64,000 bases of DNA from Podarcis filfolensis (lineage: Eukaryota), in assembly GCA_964270895.1 (NCBI GenBank), contig OZ185439.1. One strand, written 5' to 3'. The notes beneath the pieces were generated by a model, which saw nothing but the letters and a program-made list of their open reading frames with translations, was not told where the DNA came from and did no database searches. The position numbers were made by a program, and so were the translations under genes. Of the stretch, positions 16,732-52,782 are shown piece by piece (position 1 is the first letter of the stretch; each line of letters begins with the position of its first letter).

Positions 16732-17610
16732 ATGATGGCGGCTTTGGATACTAAAGCAAAAGCAAAAAAAACTCTGGGGACAGTTGATTATGTGGAGTCA
16801 TCAGAATTTGCCCAAGGAATTCTGCCTACCAAGAAGGATGTCATTCAAAACATGCTATATCTATTGCACCCAAAAAGGGCTGGGCAAGCCCAGCGATCCA
16901 AAGAAGATGCTGCCCAGTTGCTTGCTGAACTTCTGCAGGAGCACTGGTTGTTTTGCAATTTGTATACCATAGCAACACAAAGCATAAAGAAGCATATTCT
17001 TAAGGTGTATGAGGAATTTTCAAAATTATATCAGTCCAGAAAGCGAAGAAAAAATGAGTTGTTTACACAGAAAGCGGATGATTTCAACAGGAGTTCAGAG
17101 CAGCTTTTTGACATATTTTGTACAGACACAGGTACAAGAGAGAAATTGGAGCAATACAGTGGTGTGAAGATGACTGACATTGAGTGGAAATTTCTTGAAG
17201 ATCAGAGGAGTGAAAGAAAAATGTACTTTGAGGACTTCGTGGACAAGAAACAAATGGAAACAATAGAAAGACGAAGAAAAGTAGAATCACTGGAGCACTT
17301 CAGGAAGATTGCAGAAGAAGAGAAAGATGCATGTAAGCGTAAAGGAATGACTTCCAATAGAGATGAGCAGCCAGTTGAAGATGTCAGCAGTAGGAAGAAA
17401 GATGACCCCTGCCTTGGACGCAGCAAAGGAATTGGGAACTTTTCACATAAGGCAAAAAGAAAGCGCCTATCTTCTGGCTGGATTACTGGGACAGCATCTT
17501 CAACTAGCTATAGCGAGTCAGTTGCACCTGAATGTCAACATATACGTATGAGCATCAGAAAAGTCAGACCAGGGTTCTATGAGACTTTTGACAAATATGA
17601 AAACTGCTAG
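16732..17610 (+). CDS. 292-aa uncharacterised protein resembling the N-terminal domain of a DNA transposase; candidate domesticated gene
   Basis: Uninterrupted ORF preceded by acceptor tctttatttcag| at 16702. Motif order LPT..DVI / AA.LLA..L..HW / I.K.Y.EF..L / LFDIF / FLEDQR..RKM....VD recalls hATm/'cc8K15.2-like' transposase N-termini (from memory). Basic NLS-like clusters RKRRK and KAKRKR. Confidence 0.7.
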   Translation: MMAALDTKAKAKKTLGTVDYVESSEFAQGILPTKKDVIQNMLYLLHPKRAGQAQRSKEDAAQLLAELLQEHWLFCNLYTIATQSIKKHILKVYEEFSKLYQSRKRRKNELFTQKADDFNRSSEQLFDIFCTDTGTREKLEQYSGVKMTDIEWKFLEDQRSERKMYFEDFVDKKQMETIERRRKVESLEHFRKIAEEEKDACKRKGMTSNRDEQPVEDVSSRKKDDPCLGRSKGIGNFSHKAKRKRLSSGWITGTASSTSYSESVAPECQHIRMSIRKVRPGFYETFDKYENC

Positions 17611-20600
17611 CCCAACATTCAAAATCTGTTTCTGTTGAAGTTTTGGGAGGTCTTAATACCCTGACTAATTGGAAGTTGATGTAGATAATTTTGTTGGGCT
17701 CCATTAATGTACAGCGACACCACCAAAGCAATGGCACCAGTAGAAATGGGCTTTTAGCTTACTGAGAAAGTAAGATTTGTTTAGGCCTGTACTGATACTT
17801 TCACAAGATGAAAGTACTGTGTACTAAAAAGCTATAGTGTAGCAAAGGAAGACAGAAAAACCAATGTTTGGATGTTAAAGCAAACCAAATGCACAATAGT
17901 AGGTTATGTTATATAATAACAATTTAACCACTGGAACAGACTTCTTAGGAAGGTGGTGCATTCTCCATTTCATACAGTCTTCATGTTGGGCTGGACACTC
18001 CTAAAAAACATTTTGCTGAAATGTTGTATAGTGGCCCGAAATAGAAGTGTGAGGAGAAAATGCAGACTCTCCTGCAGGAGAGTCATATTATATAACCTGT
18101 TGCCCATTCCAACCTCTGTGTCTCCCAAGACTGGAAGACCATGTACAATTAAAATAAAAAATGGTAACTAGTGAGATGGCAGCTAAAAGGGGAACTTGGT
18201 TGTGGGGCTGTGTGTCACAATGCAGGATCTTTTTGAGACTCACAATAGACTGCTAACTTCCTGCCTGTTAAAACAGTAAGTAAGTAAGCACACCTGAAGG
18301 GAAAACAGTAATTGGCTCAATTATCTAAAAAGTACAGTAGTTGCCTGTAATGCCCACCCCCATACCTTGATAATACTTGTATTATACTTGATAATACTTG
18401 TATGGTCTTAAGAGACTGACCATATACAATTTGCCATTACTTCATTGAGACTTGAAGGGGTTCTGCGCCTTTCAGGACTAGGTGCTTGCAGGCAAAAGAA
18501 AATAGGTTTCCTCTGTTTGATCTTGCAGATATTTAGTTCCTAAAATACCTATACAGTTCTGAAAAGCAGCTTTTGAATAGATAGCATTGGCTCATGTGAG
18601 AAGAAAAAAAAAAGGGTCAGGAAATTTTAAAAATGGCTTTTGGTATAAATGTGGTGGTAACAACTATTTGTATATTTTCTGCATTCTTAGCAATTAAATA
18701 TCAGTGGTGAGAAATATATGTGGAAAAGTAGAATTTGTAATTGAAAATATTTGAGACATAAACATGTATAATGCACTGAACAGCATGGGGTTGGAACTGC
18801 CTTATGAATTATTTTAAAGGTGTTTAATTCTTCTTTTCCTTGAGTAAGGATTGCAAATGAATGCACTGCAATGTTTGCTACAGTGGAAGGACGTAGCTGC
18901 ACTGCAGTTATAATGAAACAGAAGCAAGTCCTTCCATCTTGAGAAATGTGTAGCTCTGCCTGCAGTGAGCATTGGTAGTACAGATTGCAGCCCTTTCAAA
19001 GCTAGGCAAAACTTCTGTTTTCCTCACTGGTTTTCCCCCAGCATACAGATGGCTAGTTTTCACAGTCTCAGATCCAAACATATTGTATGTATGATGGTCT
19101 GTGCATGTACTGTTACATTACATGACCTCTGGATCACATGGTGTATACACAGACATCCACATATGGAATTGCTGTAATCTTATCTCTGGAAAGTCACAAA
19201 CACCCGGCAACACACCCATACCCATGTTTCCCATCATGTTGGGAAGAGTATATTCCTCAGTACACTGCCCCATTGGCTGTATAGTAGTTAAATCCTAGAA
19301 ATCATGGGGTATTGGGAATGGTTTACAGATATATGTACATCACTTGATCTATCACCACCTAATGGTTCTTGGCTGAAGGTGTGAACTGTGCACCAAAATG
19401 CTGTGTGTTGGAATTAACGTTGGGCGATATAACTGGCCTGTTAAAGTTACCATAATATTCTTCTAAATTTTGCTCACATAATTTCCATAAATACAAGTAC
19501 TTCAGAATATTAAATGGTTACTTTTAGGCAAAGGGCACCTGTCTAGCCCAAAATCCTAATAACAAATTGCCATCATTCTGTTACCCTTTGCCAGAAATGG
19601 TTTTATTTCAACTGTTGCCTTTTTTCATATGGACCAAAAATGTAACTTTATGCAGCATTATATGCACGTTGTGTCAAGCTAAGGAACAATGATTTATTAC
19701 TACATCTGCCCTTGCTTATACATTTGATTTCCCATATGGGAAGTAGCCCCGCTCTAAAACCATGTCAAAAAGGCTGACTGGAGAGACGATTAATGCAATT
19801 AATTGTAATGTAATTGGGTGATGTGCATTATGTCAGTAATGCAAACAGTTTCACTGGATCTTTGAAGCAATAAAAGCACCCTTTTTTCGGGAAAACAAGT
19901 GAGCCATCACTAATGGTAGTGACAGTGCTTCCATTAAAATTTGTCTCCTTTAAAGTTTTTAGATGGATATTTCCAAATGTTTGCATTCAATAGTCATAGT
20001 TAATTTTGAAGTTGTGTTTCCATTCCCAGTCAAGATAAGTTAACCAAATGCCTATAATTATCATCCCTCATTGGTCCTAATATTAAATACCTCCCCAAAT
20101 TGCAATATATTTTCTGCACAGGCAAATTTTGAACCTTCGAATGAAGGAAATTGTCAGAATGAGATTCAGTCACTCTGAGTTTAATGTTTTAGGGATCAAA
20201 AATCTTTTTTGTTCCCTGGAAGGGGTAATTCAAATGATATATGTTCTGTAGCATACATACAAATGCCTCGCTCCATACATTGCAAAAAAGCAGCTAATTT
20301 TTCTTTTTCCATGTGTTCGTATTGATTGGTTAGGTTCATTTAAAACTCAAAGTAATGGGGGGGGGGGGGGAATATATGATTTAGTAGTAAGCGTGTGATT
20401 GTCGCATTACTGCTGAATTAATCCTACTTTTTTATTTTATTTTAAAAAGTACCAATAATCAGGCCCAGCGCTAAAGGTTTCTGGAATTTGTTGATGGCAG
20501 GCCGGCCAAAAGATCGTGTTGATTTTCTTGATAGACTGGTCATGTTCAAAAGAAGCAGCAAAAGAGAAAGTGTTGATTGTTTTTGCTTCTGAAAATTTTG

Positions 20601-24240: not shown

Positions 24241-24642
24241 GTGAGGCCAATAAGACCACCTTCCTCCTTTGTTTAGCAAAGACAGAGCAAGCAAAACAAA
24301 TCTAATCCGGATGTTCAGCAGTCATTGAAGAAGTGAAAGACAATGCGTAATAGAAAAGGAATGATATAAATATGAGTTTCTTTTTACAAGCTATACTTGC
24401 AAATCTGAATTTCCACAGGTAGGTGGTCTTGAGAGTGAGGTTTCTAAAATAAGCCAGGATCTGACTTGTACGGTCACTTCTACCCAAGATGCATGTTCCT
24501 TCACAGCATCTGCCATGACCCAAGAAAGTGTACATCAAAATTAAGGTATCTTTTAGTAAGGGTTAGCAGCTGCACCGTGACCAGAAATGGGCATGGAAGA
24601 TGGATGCTTCTAACAATCCTGTAAATGTTACCCTGTCTCAGG

Positions 24643-37840
<13,198 letters not shown>

Positions 37841-38873: not shown

Positions 38874-39628
38874 GAGTTTACTAATATGAATTAATATGTG
38901 TTGCTTATGATTATGTGATATTGTAGGTGTTTGTGGACTGCCCTTGAGTGAGTCTGCTTGTCCTTTATAGCTTGTCTCTCACGGCTACTAATGGCAGAGC
39001 ACCTTGTAGCAATTCATGTTATATGCTGAGTTAAAACATTAAAGGTGTCATGGCTGCTCCTAAATGATAAAATTGTTCTCCTGGAAGCTTTCCCAAAGTC
39101 AACTTGAAACAGTAAGAACCATTTGGGCTGCATTTGGAGGGTAAGGCGAAACTAGCAAATATTTTATTGCTTTCTAGTGCATGAATATCATGGACATTTT
39201 ATTGTAATATTGTTGTTTTTAACTTTCATTAGTTAGCTGGGGAATCGCCTTTGGGAGACGATGGGTTGCAATTTAAACAAATGAATCATTGCTTCTTAAT
39301 TAGCAAAATATGTAAAATGCATAGTTTTTGCCATACTTTACCAGTGAAATAGGAAATCCAACCTCTTTTAGAACTGGTTTACTAACCTGGACCAATAAAT
39401 CAGTGAATGGTAAAACGCTGCATGGAACATCTCTTCAGTTTATGGGAATACAGTTTGATAATAACTAAGACAGAACTAGAGATGAGGAGGAAGGAAACAA
39501 AATCACATCTTATGAAGATTGAAAAGAGCTCCAAGTAGTGAATTGGCAACAAAATGACAAGCGAGACTTAGTATTTCACAATTTTCCTTTTCTACAGGGG
39601 AGGGGTGGGTGGGAACCATCCCTTACGG

Positions 39629-39927
39629 CTAGGACCTTTCCACACCCAGTGTTGTCAGGATCTCCTGCACTAATGTTTCCAGTCGCATCTGGTGCTCAGT
39701 GATGCTGTTCATTTGCTTCTGCAATGTCAAAACATCCAGGGCTGCATCAAGCCGACTGCATCGGTCCAGGGCTTTCTTTAGGTCTGCATGTTGATGCCGC
39801 AAGCCAATTAGGTGGCCATTGATATCTTGGAGCTTCACCTGCAAGGCTTTGCGATTCCCAAAGGTGTTTTGGAATAGTCGTTTCATTTTGTACACAGAAC
39901 GCAGGATGGCAAGTCCTAGGCTGGATG
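39629..39927 (-). CDS. Terminal coiled-coil exon
   Basis: cccctcag| acceptor; LQVKLQDINGHLIGLRHQHADLKKAL...LETLVQEIL heptads; TAG stop. Confidence 0.7.
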
Positions 39928-42900
39928 CTGAGGGGAAACAGAAACGAAGACCAGACCATAAGGAGGATTGAGACAATAATGACATGGCAGACAGAGCCAA
40001 TGCCCATCTGACATTCATTCCAGTGGGTGGAGGGAAGCCTAGCTGCCTAGTCCTATAGCTACTTCAATTCCACCTCCTATGCCAGTGAGAAAATCTGCCA
40101 TCCAACCCCAGACAGCTCCCTCTGCCAGCCACCTCCCCCAAATCCCCATGCCCACCAAAAATCAAGGCAGAGAGGATGCAGCAACTGTAGCCCCGTGGTG
40201 TAGGGCCTGGGGCTATCAGACTCACACATGGTGTGGGGCTTCATGCTCCGGCGCCAATGGCATCTCCGATGTGGTGTCCTCAGCACAGGTGGTGGGTTCG
40301 CCTGTGGTGAATCCGGTGGGTTCGCCTGTAGTGAATCCGGTAGGCTCGCCTGTGGTGAATCTGGTGGGCTTGCCTGTGGTGAATCCAGTGGGCTCGCCTG
40401 TGGTGAATCCGGAGGACTCACCTGTGGTGAATCTGGTGGACTCACCTGTGGTGAATCTGGTGGGCTTGCCTGTGGTGAATCCGGTGGACTCACCTGTGGT
40501 GAATCCGGTGGACTCGCCTGTGGTGAATCTGGTGGGCTTGCCTGTGGTGAATCCAGTGGGTTGCACCTTGCCCTGGCGAGTGCAGATGGTGAGAGACGCC
40601 TCAACTTCACTCGAAGGTGCTTGTGTGGGGTCCTGCCTGGTGACTGAGGTGCCACTGGAGTAGTCTCTTCTGATGACCCTGGCGTGGCCTCTTCTGATGG
40701 CTCGGGCATGGCCTCTTCTGATGGCCCTGGCGTGGCCTCTTCTGGGTCATCATGACAGACCACAGCTAGGGTGGGAGATGATGAAGCTCAGTAACTGACT
40801 GTCTCTATTCTTCACAGTAGCCATGTCATTCCCCAAAGAGTCAAAGCTTCAATGAAGTTCGCATATGTGGGCATCCAGGGAATCCATGTCCTGAATTATG
40901 GTAGCATTCTAATGGGAACAGGGAATGACTTTGCCTATCTCTGTGAGAGGCACATCAAAGATTCACCCAGCAAAGGGCATACATCACAATACCACAATAC
41001 AAAATTGGGCATTCCAGGCAACCTTTGGTGCAACCACATTATAAAGCCAGCCTTGGACCCAAAGGCATGAATTTGATCCTGGGCTTCCCACATATAACCC
41101 AACACTCTCACTGCTTTGTAATACATACCTCACAGAAAGTTTCCACTGACCTGATGACTGGAACTGAGCTGATTCGCAAAATGATACCGATGGATTCTTT
41201 ACCTGCCAAATAAAAATAGGCACAGATGATTCAACAGGCATAGTCAAACTGCGTGTCATTCAGCAAAACACAGCACCTGCAGTCTAGAAAGACAAGTCTT
41301 GCATTTTTTATAATAGAATCCTAGAGTTCTAGAGTTGGATGGGACCCCAAGGATCATCCAATCACAGAAGCCATTAGTAAGAAAAATTAATCTCAGCCAG
41401 GTGTATTTGGCACTGCCTGTGCCAACTACCTTTTCTCAGTTTAGCTTTTGCCTATCCCCATTTTGTTTATACTCTTTCCTAGTTTACCAAGCTCTGGTTT
41501 GGGGCAAATACAGTAAAAGGCCATCTCATCTGCTGTCAAGAATCTCAGCTTGCCTTAGTGTTTTCTGGCCCATAAATCATTCTTTGGTTATCAGTCATGG
41601 TCCCTGGATCCTGCTCTTCATCTGACCCATTCTCTGGTGGCCTCACCAGACATCCTTTTATAATGATATTTATTAAATTTTCCATTTTAACAATCCAATA
41701 AAACCACATTAAAAACATTCCAAATCATACAATAATCAAACAGTCCAAATATTATGCCAAATTATAAATCTTTGTTTGGCTTCCCATGCTCTGAGGTCGG
41801 GGAGTGCTGATCATCTCACATTTGTGCTGCTTTTCATAGTTCTTCCAGGTAGTTCCCATAAGTCAATCCGATGTTAATCCTTCATTTGTTTTTAACAGCC
41901 TCCAAGTTTGTCTGGCAAGCGAGTTAAATCAATACAGTATATTTCTGTGTGGGTGTTTATATTCCTTTTCTCTCTCTTTTTATTCTTTGTACTCTGAATC
42001 TGATCGTGGCATTTCACTTTCACTTCCTCACGCCTGTGATTATCCACTGCGACACATCCCAAAATGGAGGAAATTTGGCTTTCTGCCAGTTGTACCAGGC
42101 ATATGTCCAAACTTCTCCATTTTATCTCATTCCAAAGCAATTAAGCCTGTACTTTAGCAAGAAACCTTGATTTCCACAATTGCAAGTTCATAAATCTTTT
42201 CCAAACAGTTAATAATTAGACCAAAATTATATCAATGAATACAGCACTCTCCAGTCCTGCTTGCGTACATAAACAATCTGGCAGCCAGTCCTTCCAGGGA
42301 GATTTGCCAAGTAAAATAGCAAAACGAAGTATATAAACAAGAAACAAAGGAGGCTCACCCCCCTTCTGTTCCAACATACCAGTCCCGTACTGGTAATCCT
42401 TCTTCCAGTCGAATCTTTTGGCACCTCAGAGGCTGAATCAATTAGCAGAGTAGTTTATCTCCCCTCACTCAGAGCATGCCCATTAATTAAGTCTGAATTT
42501 TCATCTTAAAAAACAGGAGTTTGTTGCTCATGGCAGTGACTTCGGAAAGTTGCCAAAGAGACGCATGGTGTTTTCCACCTAGTGCCCCCTGCCCCCTCAT
42601 TCCTCCCAGATTGGGAGCAGGTGTTGAGTGACCTGCGAGTGAAGCTGCTCCCCCCCCCCGGGGCCTGGGGCAGTTGGGAGGATGATTAGTCCCATCTCAT
42701 CCTCAAAATATTCCGTGCGAAATGGCTCTGATGTAATGGGCAGCCACCATCATGGCAGCCCAAACCGGAAGCCCTCACCAGACATCCTTTTAACTGTGCT
42801 TTCATGAGTGCTTGTGCTCATGATGTTATTAGGGCAGCTCTATACAACCCTAGTTCCTATACTGTTTGTGCCTGCAAAAGTTTCAGGGTGGACATACTTG

Positions 42901-45900
42901 CTTTGCTTCCAATTGGTGACGGCTACTATTGCCTGGCCATCATGCCTGCCCCACAGTTAGGCCACAGTCATTGCAGCACATCTCTTAATTATGTGTAGAA
43001 GTCCCTAGATCTTCCAGAGACAACACTTTTTTCCAGTTCCATTCACAACAGGTCTACTAGCATTGACAGGGAGGTGGTGCTGGGCTCAACCATTTCATCT
43101 TTCCAGGGCCCACAGGCAGCATCCATAGTCTGAAGGTTTTTTTTCCATGCTGATAGTGCAGTTCCTTTTTTATATATATTTTAAAATGTCAACTGCTTTG
43201 AGCACAGGTGTATTTGTGGAAAACATAATATACGAATAAATTGACAATATCTATGGCTGTCACACACCAATATGGTAAAACTGTTGATAAACTGTTACCT
43301 TTTTCCTCCTGCCGTATATTCGTTTTGGATTAGGAAGATATCCACTCTGAAATAAGCATGACATAATTAGTTACTCTGATGCATTAGCGGGATCCCAAAA
43401 TAGTATTTGAAATGAGGGAATCCACACAAAGAAGTGGGAACTATTTTTGAAACATCTATTTTTTGACATCAGTATATAAGAAGCTGGCTCTATTTCTTAG
43501 CACAGATACCGCTCACATCACTCCCATATATATTTATATGCGTTATTGTCATAGGTGCCTGAAAATGTTAATACATCTTTGCTCCAGGAAATACACCTCT
43601 TGCCTTTAACTGGCACACACCTGAGCAACATACAGTGGTACCTCGGGTTAAGAACTTAATTCGTTCTGGAGGTCCGTTCTTAACCTGATGTACCACTTTA
43701 ACTAATGGGGCTTCCTGCTACCGCCGCGCTGCCACCGCACGATTTCTGTTCTCATCCTGAAGCAAAGTTCTTAACCCAAGGTACTATTTTGGGGTTAGCG
43801 GAGTCTGTAACCTGAAGCATCTGTAACCCGAGGTACCACTGTGTAAGAATAAAAAGTAACAGAAAATGCAAGCAAAAGGAATTCCTTTGTTTCCAATTCT
43901 TTTAGTCTAATTTTGTGTCTATCTCACCACCAACACCTCCCATTGTTGTAGCAGGTACAAGGAAGGTACAACAATACTATATTATTACATAAGGACAGGA
44001 TATTGTATTTGTGATTATAAGAAGGAAAGGCGTGACTGTCTGCAAACTTGAAAGTATCATCTGATACTTCTTTCAGATCACATGTAGAAAATAAAGCATT
44101 AAAATTACAGGCATTACAAGTGAACTGCATACCTCTATTAATTTTTCTAAAGGAAGCCCTTTATGGCGGATACTTCTTTTCCAGGATTTCCAGCTTTCAC
44201 GTTCTCCTTCAGCCTCAAATTCTGGTGGCGTGAACCACTTTCCATCAGAACCCTTGATGGACTTCTGCAAAATTCCTATGACAAACAGAGAAGTCACATG
44301 AATGTTACACGCCTATCCCAATCAGCAAAGTTCACTGAATCATGTAAGAAATCTGTCAACAATTTATCCAATATATACTTTAGAAAACGGCGTTTCGGTG
44401 CACTGCTCTGGTTTGCCAGAAGCAGCTTAGTCGTGCTGGCCACATGACCCAGAAGCTGTACGCCAGGTCCCTCGGCCAATAAAGCGAGCTGAGCGCCACA
44501 ACCCGAGTCATCCGTGACTAGACCTAATGGTCAGGGGTCCCTTTACCTTTTTACTTTAGAAAAAAACCATATGAACAGAGATTCTGATACAAGCACTACA
44601 ATAAATTTCTGCATGGGGCTTGGTGCTTCTGACTAAAACTATTTAGTGTTTGATTTTGTTGTAAATAGGTATGCAATAAGAATCACTGATCAGGGAACAC
44701 AAGTCTGTCTTGATACTTCAGCAGCTCCTCTGCTGAACTCTTCCAGTATTTCTTTACCGTATTTTTCGCCCCATAGGACGCATTTTTCCCCTCCAAAAAT
44801 GAAGGGGAAATGTGTGTGCGTCCTATGGGGCGAATGCAGGCTTTCGCTGAAGCCTGGAGAGCGAGAGGGGTCGGTGCGCACCGACCCCTCTCGCTCTCCA
44901 GGCTTCGCGCAGATCTCCGCAAGCCGCGGGAGCCCGCGCCGGGCTCCCACAGCTTGCGGAGAGTTGCCTGCATGCCGAAGACTTCGCGCAGCTCTCCGCA
45001 AGGCGCGGGAGCCCGGCGCTGGGCTCCCGCGGCTTGCAGAGAGTTGCCTGTTCTGGGGGCTGGGGTCGGGGGAAGCTCGGGCTTCCCCAGCCCCGCGCCT
45101 GGGGGGGGGGGAATAATTTTTTTTCCTTTATTTCCCCCCCAAAAAACTAGGTGCGCCTTACGGGACGGTGCGTCCTATAGGGCGAAAAATACGGTACATG
45201 CTGGGTATATAAAATTGTTTGATTGCTTATTTTTAAGATGAATCAGGCATAGCCTCATTTTTTAATGGTACAGCATGGCAATCTGGCTTTGATTAAATCT
45301 AAGATACCTTGAGTAATTTTTCAGTCTACATTATTTGGCTATGTTGCTGAGCAGTGTCTGAGGAAAGGTGCCTTCTATTTGCTGTATTACTCAGCTACGA
45401 ATGATCGTCAAAGGAGAAGCAGAAGCAGCAGCTACTGCAACCGTCTCATGGCTAGCCATTGTAAAATTGCAGGTTGAAGAGGCAATCCATTTGAAAACTC
45501 TACAATCACATTTCTGCACACTTTTGGTTCTGACAATAGAGAAGTACTGGTATTTCTTTTCACTTCACAGTATATGGGAAGTGAAAACTATAAAAAAAAT
45601 TAGTCAAATTCATAAATTACATGCTGAAATACTTAAAGCTGACGAAATCACTTGTGCTTTTAAGAGGGATTCAAATGACTGAAAATATCATTATGATACT
45701 GAAGTAATTGCTGTAAGCTACCCTGGTTCCATAAGCAGAATGGGATATGTATAATATAAAATAAACTGTCTTCTGGGGAAAATTTGGGGGCTTCTATATA
45801 CACTTACCTAGGAACCTTCCAACTGGACTACAATAATGCACTCTATGTGAGACTTCCCTTGGGATTGGCAAGAATCTGAAGCTGGTGAAGAATACTGTGG

Positions 45901-48900
45901 CCAGATTTTGAGTGAACACCGATGTCATGTAAAGATATAGCTTTTTGCCCAAGCTTTCCCTGACCCATAAGACCAGACCCTGCTTTGTGTGTTTGAATAC
46001 ACTGAATTTATGCTTTTAAATGAACAAATAAATGAAATGGGACTTATTTCTGTTTTGAGAAGATATGTAGAAGAAAGCGTTCTTCCCCAAATGCAAATGG
46101 TAGTCATATACTAACTACATGATGGCTTCCTTCCCATCCCAATTTTTAAATCTGCCATTAGTATTATATGCCTTGTACATATTTAATACACACAGATATA
46201 CTCTTCAAAACCAACAGTTTACCTGCTGCCAATTTCTCCTTATACAAAACACCTTTAACTTGTCCACAGTGCACAGGAAGGGTGGAGCCCAGCAAATCCT
46301 CCTCTTGAATTTCAATCTGCCTTCGTTTTACTAGATGAGATCAAGAAATCGAAGTCAAATAGTTAAAATTCCTATATTTTGGGCTTCTAGAAAATAAATC
46401 TGATACCAAACTCCAGACCACCAACATGACCAGACCACCAACAGCACAGAATATTTCATATCATCTGAAAGTAATTCAGATCACTTGTAGTAAGAGTAAA
46501 TTTTAATCTGAGAGAGAAGTGAAAAGATATAATTCTAGATTAATTATATTCATCTAGTCAACAGAATTTATATACTGCTTGGTTGTAATGAAACCTCTAA
46601 GCAGTTTACAATCTGCCAGTCCACTCCAGTGAAGTTCTAGAACAGAGTGATGGAATGAATTACTTAACTATTAACACTAAGGCATGAGTGGCAGGATAAA
46701 TGAAGAAAACAGTGAGGAAAAGGATGGGCTTCGCCAGCAGAAAACTGCAAGCTTATTTAGTAATTTTACAACATTATGAAAAGTTTGTGACATTCTACAG
46801 CATTTAACTTTTTACCTTTTCGAATTCTTCTACCCTTCCATCTTTCAGTATATTGCATTCGATGCTTTCTTTTTCTCTTTCTCTTTACTGCATTTGTTGT
46901 TCCTTAAGAAAATGTTTCCAATTAATTACACACACTTATTTCTAGTTCCTTCTTCACTCTGCATTAAAGACAGTGCCCAGTGCTAGACGAACTCCATGAA
47001 GTCTTTGAACTGTTCTGGAAACCCTACCACATTTTAAATCATAATTTGGTGAAACATTATCCAAATTTCAATTAAATGGAACTTCTCTCATCACCCAAAC
47101 CAGAAAACAGCACTTAAGAGCTTTGGAACAAGCCAGGATATTAAGCAATGCCTTAATATTCTGCTTGTTTCAAAGCTTTTCACTATAGTTTCCTGGTTCA
47201 GATGAAATGGAAATATAAATAATGAAAGACTTTATGGTTTGTTTGCTGGCTCTTTGCATGACCAACCTCTCATCCCTGAACTATATGCCTTAAACTCCCC
47301 TACATATCCATGTTGGTACTCACGGCCATTTCCTAAGGAGTAATCAGGATCATGTTCATCTGTGGAAGTTGATAATTCACTGCTGTTCGCTTCTGAAGTA
47401 GAGTTATTTCCAGCATTCTGGGTAACTAAAAATGTATTATTATTATTAATTAAAATTGCATACTGCCCTTCATCCAAAGATCACAGGGCAGTTTACAATA
47501 TAAAAATATAAAATGAGAACACAAAATACATAACAAAAGAACAGACATACACCAATAACCATCCTCGCATAAACACATTTTAAAAGCCATAGATTACATA
47601 ATCAGCTGAAGGCCTGGCTATAGAAAAACATTTCATTTTTATTTTTTTTAAAGAAATATTTATTAAGATTTTACAAAGACAAATATACAAAAACACATAA
47701 TAAAAAATAAAAAAATAAGTAAACATACAGAAAAAATAAGAAAAATTAAAAACAATTATTTTTCATAACTTAAAACTCATTTGCTTGTTTCTTTGACTTC
47801 CTCACACCTCCCCTTCTTGTATTCCCATTTAAATAATCAAATCAGCAAATCCTTACCCTCTTTCATTTATCTTATCTCTATAACATTTTATAACTCAGTA
47901 TTTTCATCCATTATCAATTCATTTTTGCATATTCTTATTAACTCTGTTGCTAATACCACTTATTTCCAATCCAACACCATTTTAGTTATTTTTTTACCTA
48001 TTTATACCCTTCTTCCATATTCTTAAAGCATTACAGCTGGAAACCACTTAAATTCTATCCAACATCATTCTAACAGTCATTAATTTTACAATATTTCTGT
48101 AGATAGTCTTTAAATTTCTTCCAATCTTCTTCCACCGTCTCTTCTCCCTGGTCTCGGATTCTGCCAGTCATTTCTGCCAATCCCATATAGTCCATCACCT
48201 TCATCTGCCATTCTTCCAAAGTGGGTAAATCTTGTGTCTTCCAATACTTTGTAATAAGTATTCTTGCTGCTGTTGTAGCATACATAAAAAAAGTTCTGTC
48301 CTTCTTTGGCACCAATTGGCCGACAATGCCCAGAAGGGAGGCCTCTGGTTTCTTCAGGAAGGTATATTTAAATACCTTTTTCATTTCATTATAGATCATT
48401 TCCCAGAAAGCCTTAATCTTTGGGCACGTCCATCAAAGGTGCAAGAATGTACCTTCAGTTTCTTTACATTTCCAACATTTATTATTGGGCAAATGATAAA
48501 TTTTTGCCAGCTTGACTGGTGTCATGTACCACCTGTACATCATTTTCATAATATTCTCTCTTAAGGCATTACATGCCGTAAATTTCATACCTGTGGTCCA
48601 CAACTGTTCCCAGTCAGCAAACATAATGTTATGTCCAACATCTTGTGCCCATTTAATCATAGCAGATTTCACCGTTTCATCCTGTGTATTCCATTTCAAC
48701 AGCAAGTTATACATCCTTGACAAAATCTTAGTTTTGGGTTCTAACAGTTCTGTTTCTAATTTTGATTTTTCCACCTGGAAGCCTATAGAAAAACATTTTA
48801 GCATGGCATCTAATGTATGTTGAATATCTGTAAAGCTATGTCTGCATATTCATCATAATTGTGAAGCCTGTATTGCTTTCTCTCATCACCTGTGCAGCAG

Positions 48901-51900
48901 CTTTCTTAGCATAAAATTTGGCGAATCTGGCAAGAAAATGGGAGTGATAAAAGAAAGTCCACTCCCATTCTGGGTGCTGTGAGCACCAAATACATACAAG
49001 CGAAGTGTGGATGAAATTTACTTTGGGAGATAAGTTAACTAATAAGTGATTAGACTAAAAGGAATACGCATAGCTTTTGTTCATACCAATCTCAAGACTT
49101 TTCAAACAAGATATTGACTTGAACTTAATCTGAACTTGACTGGATCCTATGGTGAGACTGAACTTGATGTAGAATGCAGGATAACTCTGAGAAGGATTAC
49201 AATGTTTCTTGAAGGAAGAAAACTGCATTTTTATATTTTTTTTGAAGATTAGCACTTGGGAAATCTTATAACTTTGAGAGAGAAACTTATGTTCTATAAA
49301 AGTGCTGAAGACATCTAACCTAATGGAATTATAACTGTGATTTAATTTATTAAAAGGCACTTGCTGGCTAAAATCAAGATCAAAAGAAGAGGACTAGAAC
49401 ATCCATTATTAATACTGGACTAAATTAGAATCACGTCAGCGGTTCGAATCCCCGCAAGGGGGTGAGCTCCCGTTGCTTGGTCCCTGCTCCTGCCAACCTA
49501 GCAGTTCGAAAGCATGTCAAAGTGCAAATAGGTACCGCTCCGGCGGGAAGGTAAACGGTGTTTCCATGCGCTGCTCTGGTTCGCCAGAAGCGGCTTAGTC
49601 ATGCTGGCCACATGACCTGGAAGCTGTATGCTGGCTCCCTCGGCCAGTAAAGCCAGATGAGCACCGCAACCCCAGAGTCGGCCATGGCTGGACCTAATGA
49701 TCAGGGGTCCCTTTACCTCTACCTAAATTAGAATCAAAATTTAATTGTACAGGCTTATTATATTGAATATATAGAAATGATTTGGATGTGAATGGATGTA
49801 AAGATCTGAATATATAACTCTTATAAATTATATTTGTGAGTAAGGTGGGAGAGGGAAGGGATAAAGTTGGAAGCACTGGTTTCCTCTTTTGAACCTAATG
49901 AAATGTCCTTGGCAAAGTACTGACAAAGCTAAAAATAACACTATTAGTGGTGGGAAAGGACTTTTTGTTTTGAAAGTAAACCCTAGAGGAAGCTGGGAAA
50001 CAGGGAGTTAGCCCCCCCTTACTCCAAACTAGAAATGGCAGAGGAAAAAATCCATATGTTAAAACAAACTAACCAGGCCGTAATGCAAAAGAACCTAAGA
50101 GATGAATTGTATGATTTTCTTTTAGTCATGAAAAGAGAACTGTTTGATCAGATAAAAGATGTTAATAAGGCAGCTTCTCAAATCTGTAAAAGTAATAATG
50201 TACTTTCAGAGGCTGTGAGACAATTAAAAGAGGCAAACACACAAATCACCAACGTGAAAATGGTAGAGAGACAAGGTATGAGGAAGATACAAAGGAAAGT
50301 AAGAGTAGTTCAAGACAAAAATGATATTACAGTCATAACTCATGTTGCGTCTGCTTCAGGTTATGTCTTTTCAAGTTGCGTCCCGTGGCAACCTGGAAGT
50401 ACCGGGACGGTTACTTCCCAGTTTCCCCGCTTATGCATGCGCAGAAACACTACGCGCTCTGGATAAGAATGCTTCGAGCTGCGGATGTGCCTCCGGGAGG
50501 GTTTACGTCCGCAACTCGAGATTTGGGAGACTTTGACTGTGATAGAGAAGAAGCAGGAAGGGAGGGTAAAATGCATAAGAGCTACTATATGTGGTGGCAA
50601 TGTAAAATTATTAAAAAGGCCTGGGAAAAGACATATAAAGACTTGAAGATTATGTGGGAAATGATTAACGTTAAAAAAAACCTGAAATCACCACCAGGGA
50701 AAATTAAATGCAATTCACATCGGGGGAAATAAATACAGTGAATTTCTTCTCCTGCCTGAGTCCTTCCAATTCCTGGATCCAGCAATCTAATGGAGGATTC
50801 TTTTGTTGAAGTAGCCAGGCAGGGGCCACACTAGCCCCAAAGTACTGCATGGGTTGTTAGTACAGTGGTACCTCTGGTTGTGAACGGGATGAAAGGAACA
50901 CAACCTGCAGCGGCATGTCTGTGCATTCGCAGGTTGCGATTCGCTGCTTCTGCGCATGACGTCATTTTGCAAGTGGGTGGTAAGAAGGACAAAAGTCAGC
51001 ATGGTATGTGAGAGCAGGATTTAGAAGCAGGCTGCAGGCAGAAGCCTGAGAGGGAGAGCCATGCTTCGTTTCTGGTTGAATCCAAGGCTGTGGCAATGGG
51101 AGAAGCAAGACCATCTGGGCATGGCTGTAGCCAAGGGGGGGGGACAGCCGCCCCCCTTAAATCAAGTAAATAAATAAATGAACTGACAGTGTCGCAGATA
51201 GCTCGGTTCTGCCCCCCCCAACCATAAATCCTGGCTACACCCATCTGAGCTGTTACTACTTTGAGTCCCACCCCCCAGGAGGTTGTAAATATGACAAATG
51301 CTTAAAAGGAGTATGCTTCGTATTTTACTGCTCTTAAGATTGCCACAGCTTGAAGCGCCAAGGAGAGAGTAGTGGTGCCCAACCTGTGGAATGCCCTGCC
51401 ACCAGATGTCAAAGAAATAAACAACTATCTGACTTTTAGAAGACATCTGAAGGCAGCCCTGTTTAGGGAAGCTTTTAATATTTGATGAATTGTTATATTT
51501 TAATAGTTTGCTGGAAGCTACCCAGAGTGGCTGGGGAAACCCAGCCAGATGGGTGTGGTATAAATAATAATAATAATAATAATAATAATTCTTACACATC
51601 TCATCCAAACTTTGGAAGGCAGGAAAAACTTGTACAGTGGTACCTCGGGTTAAGAACTTAATTTGTTCTGGAGGTCTGTTCTTAACCTGAAACTGTTCTT
51701 AACCTGAAGCACCACTTTAGCTAATGGGGCTTCCTGCCAGAGCACAATTTCTGTTCTTATCCTGAAGTAAAGTTCTTAACCTGAAGCACTATTTCTGGGT
51801 TAGCGGAGTCTGTAACCTGAAGTATCTGTAACCTGAAGCGTCTGTAACACAAGGTACCACTGTACTGTACATTTGTGTATGGGGGGGGGGGTTTACTGTG

Positions 51901-52452
51901 TGACAAGGATGCAAATCTGATCGTTATTTTCAAAAGAAGCCAATGCCCCCATGTTTTGGAGGAAACACATTAGCAGCCCTTTCTACTATTGCTCGCTCAC
52001 CACATGTAAGGAGAATCTTCACTTTCCGGGTCTGATAATATTAAGCAAATAACTGTGACGTGGCTGTTAATGAAACACATCCTCTGGAGGCTGGCATTTT
52101 GAGAAGGGCTGCTTTACTTCCTTCGCTGCTGCCCCCAGTTTCCCGCTCAAACTCGAATTTCCCGCTCAATCCCTCCCGGGCCTCCCAGGCTTCCCCGGCG
52201 GGCGCTCCCGCCTCGCTTAGGACGCGGATGGTGGGCGCACAAGGGCCAGGGAGCCCCTTATAAGGGGCTTCCAATCAGGTTACAAAACAACGGCCTATGG
52301 GACGGGGCGGGGACCCCGCCAACACCGTCTGAGACTGAAGCAGCAACTCCTTCCCCTGTATGGAAATGAACCGGGCACTTACTTCCCTCTTTCTCCTTGG
52401 CACTGGTCGGAGCAGAGGCGTGAGGCGCCGAGGGACCAGCGCCACCTTCCAT
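39629..52452 (-). CDS. SP100/SP110/SP140-family SAND protein with Ser-Pro minisatellite and C-terminal coiled coil (~500 aa)
   Basis: Exons 52383-52452, 47324-47425, 46816-46902, 46223-46330, 44133-44275, 43299-43346, [42359-42424, 41151-41202 tentative], 40226-40765 and 39629-39927 sum to 1515 nt in frame. SAND motif LPVHCGQVKGVLYKEKL|G...DGKWFTPPEFE...KSWKRSIR. Confidence 0.75.
40226..40765 (-). CDS. 540-nt low-complexity exon with two 8-aa repeat arrays
   Basis: cctag|CT GTG...ATG T|gtgagt, phase 1-1, no stop codons. Confidence 0.7.
40301..40564. repeat. 24-bp minisatellite, 11 units
   Basis: Unit CCTGTGGTGAATCCGGTGGGCTCG; encodes DSPQ(A/V)SPP on the minus strand. Confidence 0.97.
41660..42190 (-). 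mobile_element. Probable LINE (L1-like) 3' fragment
   Basis: T-rich tail-like segment and degenerate ORF2-like text; family uncertain. Confidence 0.4.
43299..43346 (-). CDS. Post-SAND 48-nt exon
   Basis: SGYLPNPKRIYGRRKK, typical of the SP family. Confidence 0.85.
43633..43841. mobile_element. Tigger/pogo-like MITE
   Basis: TIR CAGTGGTACCTCGGGTTA. Confidence 0.85.
44133..44275 (-). CDS. SAND domain exon 2
   Basis: GILQKSIKGSDGKWFTPPEFEAEGERESWKSWKRSIRHKGLPLEKLIE. Confidence 0.95.
44388..44551 (+). mobile_element. Sauria SINE, 5'-truncated
   Basis: 12-bp TSD TACTTTAGAAAA. Confidence 0.88.
44757..45194. mobile_element. Tc1/mariner-type MITE, CpG-rich
   Basis: TIR CCGTATTTTTCGCCC(C/T)ATAGGACGCA, TA TSD, internal palindrome and internal duplication. 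Confidence 0.9.
46223..46330 (-). CDS. SAND domain exon 1
   Basis: LPVHCGQVKGVLYKEKLAA. Confidence 0.92.
46816..46902 (-). CDS. SAND gene NLS-like exon
   Basis: VKRKRKRKH...KGRRIRK, phase 1-1. Confidence 0.8.
47324..47425 (-). CDS. SAND gene Ser/Asn-rich exon
   Basis: Phase 1-1, tttag|...|gtgagt. Confidence 0.7.
47635..48782 (-). mobile_element. L1-clade LINE 3' fragment
   Basis: ORF2 C-terminus with CWKC...H..W.C knuckle and AARILITKYWK...LPTLEEW; A-rich tail. Confidence 0.88.
49434..49722 (+). mobile_element. Sauria SINE
   Basis: 14-bp TSD CTAAATTAGAATCA. Confidence 0.88.
50035..50335 (+). mobile_element. Possible LINE ORF1 coiled-coil remnant
   Basis: K/E/Q-rich heptad-like ORF among repeat debris; assignment weak. 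Confidence 0.3.
51375..51589 (+). mobile_element. L2 LINE 3' fragment
   Basis: Same tail as 36705-37073, ending in (AAT)n. Confidence 0.8.
51635..51862. mobile_element. Tigger/pogo-like MITE
   Basis: TA-CAGTGGTACCT...AGGTACCACTG-TA. Confidence 0.88.
52383..52452 (-). CDS. SAND gene first coding exon
   Basis: MEGGAGPSAPHASAPTSAKEKEG|gtaagt in a CpG-rich region. Confidence 0.7.
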
Positions 52453-52555
52453 GAAAACAGCCGAGCGCCGCCAGACTACCCGAACTGTCTTTCTCGGCCG
52501 ATGTATTCAGCAGAAACGAAAGTGAAGACATCACTTCCGCAATGAATTTGAACGA

Positions 52556-52782
52556 AACAAAAAAAAAAAATTTCCTTCCAGTAGCACCTTAAAGACCAAC
52601 TAAGTTAGTTCTTGGTATGAGCTTTCGTGTGCATGCACACTTCTTCAGATACACATTTCGTGCATGCACACGAAAGCTCATACCAAGAACTAACTTAGTT
52701 GGTCTTTAAGGTGCTACTGGAAGGGAAAAAAATTTTTTTGTTTTGACTATGGCAGACCAACACGGCTACCTATCTGTAACTG
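52556..52782. mobile_element. Penelope-like retroelement terminal fragment with inverted duplication
   Basis: ccagtagcaccttaaagac...agctttcg...cttcttcagat resembles reptile Penelope termini; ~70-bp inverted arms; 12-bp TSD GAATTTGAACGA (52544-52555, 52783-52794). Confidence 0.85.
52615..52652 (-). ncRNA. Minimal type I hammerhead ribozyme motif
   Basis: GUAU-CUGAAGA-A-GUGUGCAUGCACAC-GAAA-GC-UC-AUAC: both core boxes, stem II, stem I GUAU/AUAC and palindromic AGCU stem III. Confidence 0.75.

Follow-up and report, generated by a model that had tools for sequence, protein, structure and literature searches.

The window analysed here, a stretch of 64,000 nucleotides of Podarcis filfolensis (contig OZ185439.1, assembly GCA_964270895.1), contains a gene cluster with the order SP140-like > gene > < AIRE. 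The SP140-like gene lies upstream and ends at about 57.0 kb, the convergent AIRE gene ends at about 37.8 kb, and the gene between them, which is the subject of this analysis, lies 4.5 kb downstream of the SP140-like gene. The window's PHD and bromodomain exons, at 60.0 and 58.0-57.0 kb, are part of this SP140-like gene, and the synteny in P. raffonei is identical. The central gene occupies 52452 to 39629 on the minus strand as an open frame of nine exons, with 482 codons plus the stop (1449 nt) and no in-frame stop. Inspection of each exon for boundaries, splice sites and phase shows that all introns are GT-AG and that the phases are consistent throughout. An earlier sequence-only reading of this DNA had proposed a phase-consistent model of about 500 residues; the intact frame and the phases hold, while the length is 482 residues. 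Its exon 1 donor and exon 2 acceptor were each 1 nt out, and its start of the first SAND exon, at about 46300, is corrected to 46330. The exons are:

Exon 1, 52383..52452, minus strand: 70 nt from the ATG, encoding MEGGAGPSAPHASAPTSAKEKEG plus 1 nt, with a GT donor at 52382
Exon 2, 47324..47425, minus strand: 102 nt, acidic linker rich in Ser/Thr/Asn, with an AG acceptor and a GTGAGT donor
Exon 3, 46816..46902, minus strand: 87 nt, basic exon with a putative nuclear localisation signal (KRKRKRKHR...RRIRK), splice sites and phase verified
Exon 4 (SAND1), 46223..46330, minus strand: 108 nt, with an acceptor at 46331 that was also predicted independently
Exon 5 (SAND2), 44133..44275, minus strand: 143 nt, carrying the K-S-W-K motif; covered, and joined to exon 6, by contigs of all four runs
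Exon 6, 43299..43346, minus strand: 48 nt, post-SAND, encoding SGYLPNPKRIYGRRKK; contig joints 44133/43346 and 43299/41202
Exon 7, 41151..41202, minus strand: 52-nt linking exon, encoding VKNPSVSFCESAQFQSS; contig joints 43299/41202 and 41151/40765, present also in the P. raffonei protein
Exon 8, 40226..40765, minus strand: 540 nt, Pro/Ser-rich with two repeats; contig joints at both ends
Exon 9, 39629..39927, minus strand: terminal exon with a conserved helical hairpin of 98 residues and the stop codon; joint 40226/39927 in runs X3 and X4

The Gnomon models XP_053245656.1/657.1 of P. raffonei share this exon chain; the first of them (P0006 below) was used in tblastn comparisons of the 5' exons. 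Exon 1 corresponds to its residues 1-23 (100% identity, phase verified), exon 2 to residues 24-58 (94%), exon 3 to residues 59-89 and exon 4 to residues 87-123 (100%). The CpG observed/expected ratio near exon 1 is 1.11 (52400-52599). The localisation signal of exon 3 is judged from composition.

Transcript contigs were available from four runs (X1-X4) of two studies, the source being a relative 95-99% alike and the runs being presumed RNA. These contigs carry exact junctions from the second SAND exon through the 48-nt, 52-nt and 540-nt repeat exons to the terminal exon, in the form of four canonical minus-strand joints (44133/43346, 43299/41202, 41151/40765 and 40226/39927). A single SNP adjoins the first of these joints. 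Direct coverage extends from exon 5 onward; exons 1-4 rest on the match to P0006, the splice sites and the phase, and contig X4/28 has 410 nt 5' of the second SAND exon, a length that fits exons 1-4 plus about 45 nt of 5' UTR. The gene is thus real, spliced and transcribed, with transcription read from runs presumed to be RNA. The chain 43299 to 40765 to 39927, on which the sequence-only reading had staked its continuation into a 540-nt repeat exon and a helical terminal exon, is recovered in these presumed mature RNAs with exact joints, by way of exon 7. Of the two linking exons that it had offered, the one at 41151-41202 is used, while a 66-nt exon at 42359..42424 on the minus strand is not part of the gene: every contig crossing the interval skips it (43299/41202), and the proteins of P. 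raffonei, P. lilfordi, P. muralis, Zootoca and Hemicordylus lack it as well. No support was obtained for read-through out of the SP140-like neighbour upstream, the contigs showing exon 5 onward, and a transposon origin of the tail exon was dropped because the contig depth there is low and single-copy-like.

Two annotated products, isoform X2 of Hemicordylus (P0004, 270 aa) and the skink model Lerista P0002 (268 aa), begin after the SAND domain, so SAND-less products from an internal start may exist, as would be expected if exons 8 and 9 were a separate downstream gene accidentally colinear with the SAND exons. The junction chain contradicts such a separation, as contigs join exons 5-6-7-8 and exons 8-9 in frame, and the RefSeq models of five species agree with the contigs in joining exons 7-8-9 to the SAND exons, which makes two genes extremely improbable. 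In Lerista the SAND exons were missed by the model: the contig contains both of them, followed on one strand by the linker and tail exons.

What defines the SP100, SP140 and AIRE proteins is the combination of chromatin readers with a SAND domain and a CARD-like multimeriser, and it is through this architecture that their biology in immunity and tolerance is interpreted. Pfam detects SAND at 46167-46340 (E 3.5e-6) and 44076-44312 (E 3e-17), both on the minus strand, which agrees with the two canonical SAND exons noticed earlier, and in the ortholog with E 6e-28. The K-x-W-K DNA-binding motif of the domain reads KSWK, with W and K retained. When compared with the PDB, the SAND and post-SAND stretch is closest to SP140 (8j70, E 3e-24) and SP100 (1h5p, E 9e-23), with GMEB1 far behind (1oqj, E 1.6e-7), and exon 6 aligns with ENGFLPDPPRIRYRKKK of SP140 in 8j70. 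By these alignments the domain is of the SP140/SP100 type. The homology continues beyond SAND on both sides: exon 2 is homologous to the HSR-SAND linker, and exon 7 to KENPSRPCRTSAKFQLSE, of the SP140-like protein P0021 of H. capensis. Together with the location in the SP cluster, this bears out the assignment of the gene as an SP-family paralog descended from that cluster.

The likeness to SP140 and SP100 (human 2q37.1) thus comprises the SAND type, the basic exon that follows, the pre-SAND linker, exon 7 and the location in the SP/AIRE cluster. At the sensitivity of tblastn, the lizard gene differs in having neither an HSR/CARD domain nor PHD and bromodomain, as the sequence-only reading had proposed. 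Pfam finds no HSR in P0006 or P0008, nor the PHD and bromodomain of SP140, SP110 and SP100C type; tblastn with three HSR sequences and the AIRE CARD over 37.9-57.0 kb on either strand gives nothing better than E 0.17, and there is no tblastn match to PHD or bromodomain between the gene and AIRE. The HSR/CARD is the multimerising module of AIRE (PMC7118133). The C-terminal half of the lizard protein consists instead of a Ser-Pro repeat and an orphan hairpin, which by phmmer of the tail is not seen in mammalian SP proteins.

Exon 8, which is open solely at offset 2, its incoming phase, contains two 24-nt arrays detected by TRF, one of 3.3 copies of PSEEATPG type and one of 11.2 copies, yielding 11 clean octapeptides of DSPQ[AV]SPP type, 20 SP dipeptides and 5 TP dipeptides. 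The repeat number shifts fast between species; against P. raffonei the exon shows 24 substitutions and a difference of one 24-nt unit.

The terminal exon was earlier described as heptad-rich, and this signal exceeds that of shuffled sequences: the a/d positions are hydrophobic at 0.69-0.88, against 0.12-0.21 elsewhere, an excess that no more than 27 of 2000 shuffles attain. AF2 predicts a two-helix hairpin with helices at 2-59 and 65-92 (mean pLDDT 77), consistent with amphipathic helices of heptad periodicity. In a full-length AF2 prediction of P0006 from a 7-sequence alignment (mean pLDDT 43), in which even the SAND domain is unfolded, the tail once more has the highest confidence. This structural check gave a predicted fold and no relative in profile searches of Pfam and the PDB. 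Pfam searches with the exons and with each of the eight tail sequences give sub-threshold helical matches alone (HR1_TOCA, Occludin_ELL); in sequence and profile searches of the PDB no match is significant, the top one being Shrub (5j45, E 0.004) over a helical hairpin; and Foldseek against the PDB returns generic hairpins (best E 0.68). The nearest folds, none significant, belong to helical hairpins that dimerise, among them ROP, EsxA and the histidine-kinase DHp. Phmmer against 1.84 billion representative proteins matches four clusters, all of squamate SP-cluster proteins, in line with the proposed lineage specificity. The terminal exon is, as far as such searches reach, an orphan module. 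The tail was not found by phmmer among representatives of annotated snakes, iguanians and geckos and is therefore dispensable in many squamates.

The layout had earlier been likened to that of DEAF1 and GMEB1/2, which likewise combine a nuclear localisation signal, a SAND domain, a disordered stretch and a C-terminal helical self-association region, the last being a prediction in the lizard protein. The coiled coil of DEAF1 forms tetramers (PMC3378519), and DEAF1 and GMEB bind paired CpG half-sites, with oligomerisation proposed as an aid (PMC4274154). The likeness holds for the layout and goes no further: the lizard SAND is far closer to SP140 than to GMEB1, Pfam gives SAND alone in P0006 and P0008, so that the MYND domain of DEAF1 is lacking, and the tail has no sequence or profile similarity to the DEAF1/GMEB coiled coils, its phmmer matches being confined to squamate SP-cluster proteins. 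The resemblance is analogous, a case of convergence rather than family membership.

Orthologous Gnomon/RefSeq models are present in P. lilfordi, P. muralis and Zootoca as well, and in the cordylid Hemicordylus capensis a SAND-plus-tail protein of 413 aa shows exons 5-9 in like order. Between Podarcis and Hemicordylus, identity is 58% in SAND, 47% in the tail and 25-42% in every other part, and the tail alignment retains 32 invariant columns in 8 sequences from three lizard families. With the skink exons in the same arrangement, the gene has been kept since before the skink-lacertid split. The non-repeat exons show 3 substitutions against P. raffonei, all non-synonymous, with introns 0.6% diverged; these are too few substitutions for dN/dS per exon. 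Compared with the relative that supplied the presumed RNA runs, 10 of 273 nt in the terminal exon are changed, a divergence at least as high as in the introns, and 3 of 5 listed differences change the residue; recent constraint therefore looks weak, or selection diversifying.

These substitutions, the fast-changing repeat number and the inconsistency of isoforms and names across automatic annotations could be taken to indicate a transcribed but functionally decaying partial duplicate, whose frame is open by chance or through recent origin. We consider this very unlikely, given that the window has an uninterrupted nine-exon frame, that four lacertids and the cordylid likewise preserve the SAND-plus-tail frame, that SAND and tail exons are recognisable and colinear in a skink, that conservation of SAND and tail clearly exceeds that of the linkers, and that contig depth is greater for spliced forms than for unspliced contigs.

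An SP-type SAND without HSR, PHD or bromodomain, encoded between the SP140-like gene and AIRE, would also suit a passive competitor that occupies the DNA sites of the SP140-like protein or AIRE and damps their action, its tail serving for stability only. Mammals offer a precedent in short reader-less SP products (SP100B, mouse Sp110). However, across the Scinciformata-Episquamata split only one part of the protein is better conserved than the tail, which is beyond the need of a stabilising appendage, and such a role is distinctly unlikely.

We put at roughly 55% the probability that the gene, functional and specific to squamates, belongs to the SP100/SP140 family as a partial tandem duplicate of an SP140-like gene and combines a SAND domain with a self-associating hairpin. 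The copy, arising within the SP140-like > gene > < AIRE cluster, would have retained the pre-SAND linker, the basic nuclear-localisation exon, two SAND exons and two post-SAND exons, acquired its own first exon in place of the HSR/CARD exons, and had its PHD-bromodomain exons replaced by the Pro/Ser-rich, presumably disordered exon and the exon for an amphipathic helical hairpin of about 95 residues. Gene structure, splicing, transcription, domain content, conservation and synteny are observed here, whereas import into the nucleus, binding to DNA, oligomerisation and a role in regulation are inferred: the protein would enter the nucleus, bind DNA via its SP-type SAND and self-associate via its hairpin tail, the probable form being a dimer with a four-helix bundle or an oligomer of higher order. 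It would thereby contact DNA multivalently, relying on neither CARD filaments nor histone reading, with the DEAF1/GMEB layout arrived at independently. The approximately 25 SP/TP sites of the repeat are candidate sites of proline-directed phosphorylation that could tune the protein. A monomeric hairpin, or one on which another protein docks, would also be compatible with these data.

Such docking, with a different partner (an SP-family protein or an unrelated nuclear factor) in place of the protein itself, is suggested by the invariant non-heptad residues of the tail (SS-G-AIL, GHL-GL, HQ), which point to a specific surface over a generic zipper. A potential partner is encoded in Hemicordylus, where the HSR-only "Sp-100-like" protein XP_053160211.1 (P0003), encoded 6 kb downstream of the SAND-plus-tail gene, ends in the same hairpin module, 75% identical to that of its neighbour and 45% to that of the window gene; in cordylids the HSR-plus-tail and SAND-plus-tail proteins could pair by way of this common module, so that the clustering and DNA-binding parts of an SP100-like protein would sit on separate chains. 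The HSR-only protein shares the terminal hairpin exon with the window gene and differs in lacking SAND and in carrying an HSR together with three repeated basic exons. Its gene looks recent because the HSR is 83% identical to that of the Hemicordylus SP140-like paralog, and phmmer found no lacertid HSR-plus-tail counterpart among representatives, which leaves the window's own lineage without such a partner. Docking of this kind is possible though unlikely. As the hairpin exon closes a SAND gene in lacertids, cordylids and skinks and, in Hemicordylus, a recently formed HSR gene, one may speculate further, on similarly slim odds, that it is a squamate-born module shuffled as a single exon among SP-cluster genes, providing a shared pairing interface that splits clustering and DNA binding between chains. 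If so, the functions that SP100/SP140 carry on one chain in mammals would have been recombined across chains into a modular, fast-evolving set of nuclear-body or innate-immune regulators in lizards.

The gene shows that the SAND module is separable from the SP architecture and, fitted with an orphan helical tail, yields a DEAF1/GMEB layout from an SP ancestor. It provides a natural test of the role of SAND without CARD filaments and histone reading, as well as a dated case of a new protein module joining an immune gene family. A comparable case is SP140L, a primate gene from SP100/SP140 rearrangement (PMC4548144): both are new SP-family genes from local rearrangement or partial duplication in the cluster, but SP140L recombines existing SP modules, whereas the lizard gene gained a module without detectable relative and lost both ancestral ends.

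A literature search found no study of the gene. It is already in the databases, with predicted orthologs in RefSeq and UniProt, under misleading names: RefSeq variously calls it ARHGAP17-like, DEAF1 homolog or SP140, and the annotations differ on isoforms and names. XP_053245656.1 is misnamed "rho GTPase-activating protein 17-like", and NCBI labels the Zootoca and Hemicordylus products "DEAF1 homolog".

The target gene is transcribed, spliced and conserved. Its protein combines an SP-type SAND domain with a basic stretch, a low-complexity stretch rich in Ser and Pro and a conserved helical hairpin, and is devoid of both the multimerising (HSR/CARD) and the chromatin-reading (PHD and bromodomain) domains of the family. 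Its exon boundaries were refined and the phase checked one exon at a time, with the exons left unjoined:

52452-52383, minus strand, exon 1
47425-47324, minus strand, exon 2
46902-46816, minus strand, exon 3
46330-46223, minus strand, exon 4 (SAND)
44275-44133, minus strand, exon 5 (SAND)
43346-43299, minus strand, exon 6 (48 nt)
41202-41151, minus strand, exon 7
40765-40226, minus strand, exon 8
39927-39629, minus strand, exon 9 (terminal)

These nine exons show AG acceptors and GT donors throughout, compatible phases and no in-frame stops, and sum to 1449 nt, i.e. 482 codons and a stop. Both SAND exons proposed by the sequence-only reading are recovered by the Pfam SAND model (E = 3.5e-6 and 3e-17). 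The Podarcis raffonei ortholog (P0006, 490 aa), which was used in place of the joined translation of the window in full-length searches, aligns to precisely the nine exons, and we hold the gene model to be correct with very little doubt. The first intron also contains two open frames, 138 and 120 aa long (48073-48849, minus strand), in which we see a likeness to the C-terminal portion of a LINE ORF2.

Eight small sequencing runs of a related organism contain 15-20% of the stretch's words, about the share taken up by exons. Contigs from four of these runs (X1-X4, from two studies) were compared with window positions 39200-45199; none of the four is recorded as RNA, and their nature was judged from joints and depth. 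The joint 44133|43346, with one SNP adjoining, and the joint 43299|41202 (raw report 41198>43295, with the cut at +4) are found in contigs of all four runs, 41151|40765 in those of X1-X3, and 40226|39927 in those of X3 and X4. On the plus strand all four joints read CT..AC, as GT..AG introns of a minus-strand gene do, and the last three carry the spliced path from 43299 through 40765 to 39927 that the sequence-only reading had named as a check. Of the two linking exons that it had placed tentatively, 41151-41202 is joined at both ends in the contigs, whereas the 66-nt exon (42424-42359) is passed over by every spliced contig that crosses it and was rejected. Given these canonical joints and the presence, at lower depth, of unspliced contigs covering introns, the runs resemble RNA-seq with some pre-mRNA; a DNA run is incompatible with such joints, save in the case of a processed copy. 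One contig (X4/28) has 410 nt, known by length alone, upstream of the second SAND exon, a length that exons 1-4 (365 nt) and a short 5' UTR would account for. The residue changes Y>H, K>E and T>I in the contigs match the P. muralis protein, so the runs probably derive from P. muralis or a close relative. The summed contig depth, in the tens over the exons, is 10^4 to 10^5 at 43600-43999 (intron 5) and 44400-44599 (intron 4), where SINE-like dispersed repeats lie and chimeric joints are many.

The window is free of N runs, and its map was drawn by reading open frames and aligning lizard proteins onto it:

about 2-5.7 kb, minus strand, SCLY-like exons
about 7.4-13.4 kb, an ERV
16.6-17.6 kb, a 322-aa ORF
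24625-24822 and 25591-25803, plus strand, CARD exons of AIRE, with PHD1 near 32.5 kb and PHD2 near 34.5 kb
52452 to 39629, minus strand, the target gene
58.0-57.0 kb, minus strand, bromodomain exons of an SP140-like gene upstream of the target, with its PHD exon at about 60.0 kb

The target gene is thus flanked by the SP140-like gene and a convergent AIRE, whose coding sequence ends near 37.8 kb in the alignment to P. raffonei. AIRE lies tail-to-tail with the SP-family genes and near SCLY, and the order in P. raffonei is identical. In human, AIRE is on 21q22.3, and SP100/110/140 and SCLY are on 2q37; as the lizard genes adjoin each other and the human ones are on separate chromosomes, the lizard may have retained an ancestral AIRE-SP cluster. 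AIRE and the target converge, with only about 1.8 kb between their stop codons (37.8-39.6 kb), and the earliest AATAAA past the target stop is at 39203, so the two 3' UTRs may approach each other or overlap.

The SAND domain with the post-SAND stretch matches SP140 (8j70) with E = 3e-24 and SP100 (1h5p) with E = 9e-23, and is far closer to these than to GMEB1 (E = 1.6e-7). The SP140 alignment extends through the 48-nt exon (ENGFLPDPPRIRYRKKK versus ESGYLPNPKRIYGRRKK), and homology to P0021, an SP140-like protein of Hemicordylus capensis, extends N-terminally to the Ser-rich linker and C-terminally to the equivalent of exon 7. The sequence-only reading had found no HSR/CARD exon between 52382 and 47426, and no remnant of HSR/CARD, PHD or bromodomain is detectable by tblastn anywhere in 57.0-37.9 kb. 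The SP140/SP100-type SAND, the homology to P0021 on both its sides and this lack of remnants together indicate that the gene copies part of an SP140-like gene, with a first exon of its own where the HSR exons would be and two new exons at its 3' end. P0021 itself (isoform X2, 738 aa) shows an unusual tandem amplification, with three consecutive SAND domains (three BLASTP segments) between the HSR and the PHD-bromodomain part.

A word search with the terminal exon gave no matches. An exhaustive phmmer search of 1.84 billion representative proteins with the 98-aa terminal exon ("tail") recovered only four real matches, with the tail C-terminal in all; a fifth, a bacterial surface-repeat protein, was spurious. 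By cluster look-up, P0001 (99% identical) and P0006 are isoforms X2 and X1 of P. raffonei LOC128414428, P0002 (49%) is a hypothetical protein of Lerista edwardsae, and P0003 (45%) is the "nuclear autoantigen Sp-100-like" of H. capensis. The fourth, P0004 (46%), belongs with P0008 to H. capensis LOC128351948. Three further species come from a word search with P0006: P. lilfordi ("SP140 isoform X1"), P. muralis ("SP140-like", LOC114597665) and Zootoca vivipara (LOC118093498). SAND is the sole Pfam domain in P0006 and P0008, and HSR in P0003. P0004 (isoform X2, 270 aa, predicted) has an alternative first exon and starts after the SAND, and would be a linker-hairpin protein without it.

The order of exons 5-9 is unchanged in H. 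capensis. The annotated Lerista model (268 aa) has no SAND; its 20-kb contig (L004) has both SAND exons (1120-1230 and 3523-3675) and, downstream on one strand, the linker and tail exons (16791-17177 and 17608-17916). As the same order occurs in a cordylid and a skink, the SAND-tail architecture is older than the Scinciformata-Episquamata split. The tail was not found in annotated snakes, iguanians and geckos in one single-sequence phmmer search of representatives; that the more distant skink and cordylid still match at 45-49% identity suggests loss or missing annotation in these groups. The Lerista gene is present on two near-identical 20-kb contigs (JAJKFI010012106.1 and 012107.1), probably uncollapsed haplotypes.

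Eight tail sequences from three families share 32 invariant columns, including the non-heptad motifs SS-G-AIL, GHL-GL and HQ. Between Podarcis and Hemicordylus the tail is 47% identical, the SAND 58% and every other segment 25-42%. For the last exon, where a coiled coil had been proposed, AF2 on the tail alignment predicts two helices, a long one (2-59) and a second (65-92), separated by a short loop, with a mean pLDDT of 77, and the a/d heptad positions are 0.69-0.88 hydrophobic versus 0.12-0.21 elsewhere. The tail has no significant match in Pfam, in sequence or profile searches of the PDB, or by Foldseek; the nearest shapes, below significance, are dimerising hairpins such as ROP, EsxA, histidine-kinase DHp and Shrub.

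The KRKRKRK stretch of the protein would direct nuclear import, the SAND would bind DNA, the C-terminal hairpin would mediate self-association, and the Ser-Pro repeat might permit phospho-regulation. The DEAF1 coiled coil forms tetramers (PMC3378519), and both DEAF1 and GMEB recognise CpG half-sites in pairs, which oligomerisation has been proposed to help (PMC4274154); AIRE multimerises via its CARD (PMC7118133), the domain missing from the target protein. We give this reading as a whole, a SAND DNA binder self-associating through its hairpin in a DEAF1/GMEB-like layout, a probability of roughly 0.55. That the protein, without the multimerising and reader domains, is purely a competitor is less likely. 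The main rival reading makes the hairpin a surface for hetero-docking, as 6 kb downstream of the H. capensis SAND-tail gene lies an HSR-only gene ending in a tail exon 75% identical to that of its neighbour:

L001:10001-27737 (H. capensis CM050092.1), HSR, three repeated 33-aa basic exons and a terminal hairpin exon

However, the HSR of this gene is 83% identical to that of the SP140-like paralog P0021, so that it looks like a young, recent chimera, and a lacertid counterpart was not found among the representative proteins.

Relative to P. raffonei, the non-repeat exons have only three substitutions, all non-synonymous, counts too small for a test, and the terminal exon has 10 differences in 273 nt from the relative in the RNA runs, a rate close to that of the introns. 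Recent evolution of the gene thus appears fast, on small counts, as is common in the SP family; a neutrally decaying copy is the less likely explanation beside a functional SAND-hairpin protein. Exon 8 (25% proline) has two 24-nt tandem arrays encoding 11 DSPQ[AV]SPP units, with 20 SP and 5 TP dipeptides. P. raffonei has about 16 repeat units and the window one 24-nt unit fewer, P. lilfordi, P. muralis and Zootoca have 4-6, and Hemicordylus none. Against P. raffonei this exon shows 24 substitutions and the one-unit indel, with introns differing by 0.6%; its divergence is repeat turnover rather than point divergence.

RefSeq and UniProt already list the gene model in at least six squamates, automatically named in four different ways, so that the observation is not new to the databases; a literature search found no paper on the gene. 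What is new as biology is that a member of the SP family has had both of its characteristic ends replaced and carries an orphan, exon-sized helical module. The names of the orthologs P0006, P0009, P0013 and P0008 conflict: "rho GTPase-activating protein 17-like" (isoform X1 of P. raffonei), "nuclear body protein SP140", "DEAF1 homolog" (isoform X1 of LOC128351948) and "uncharacterized", with the ARHGAP17 name presumably derived from the proline-rich repeat.
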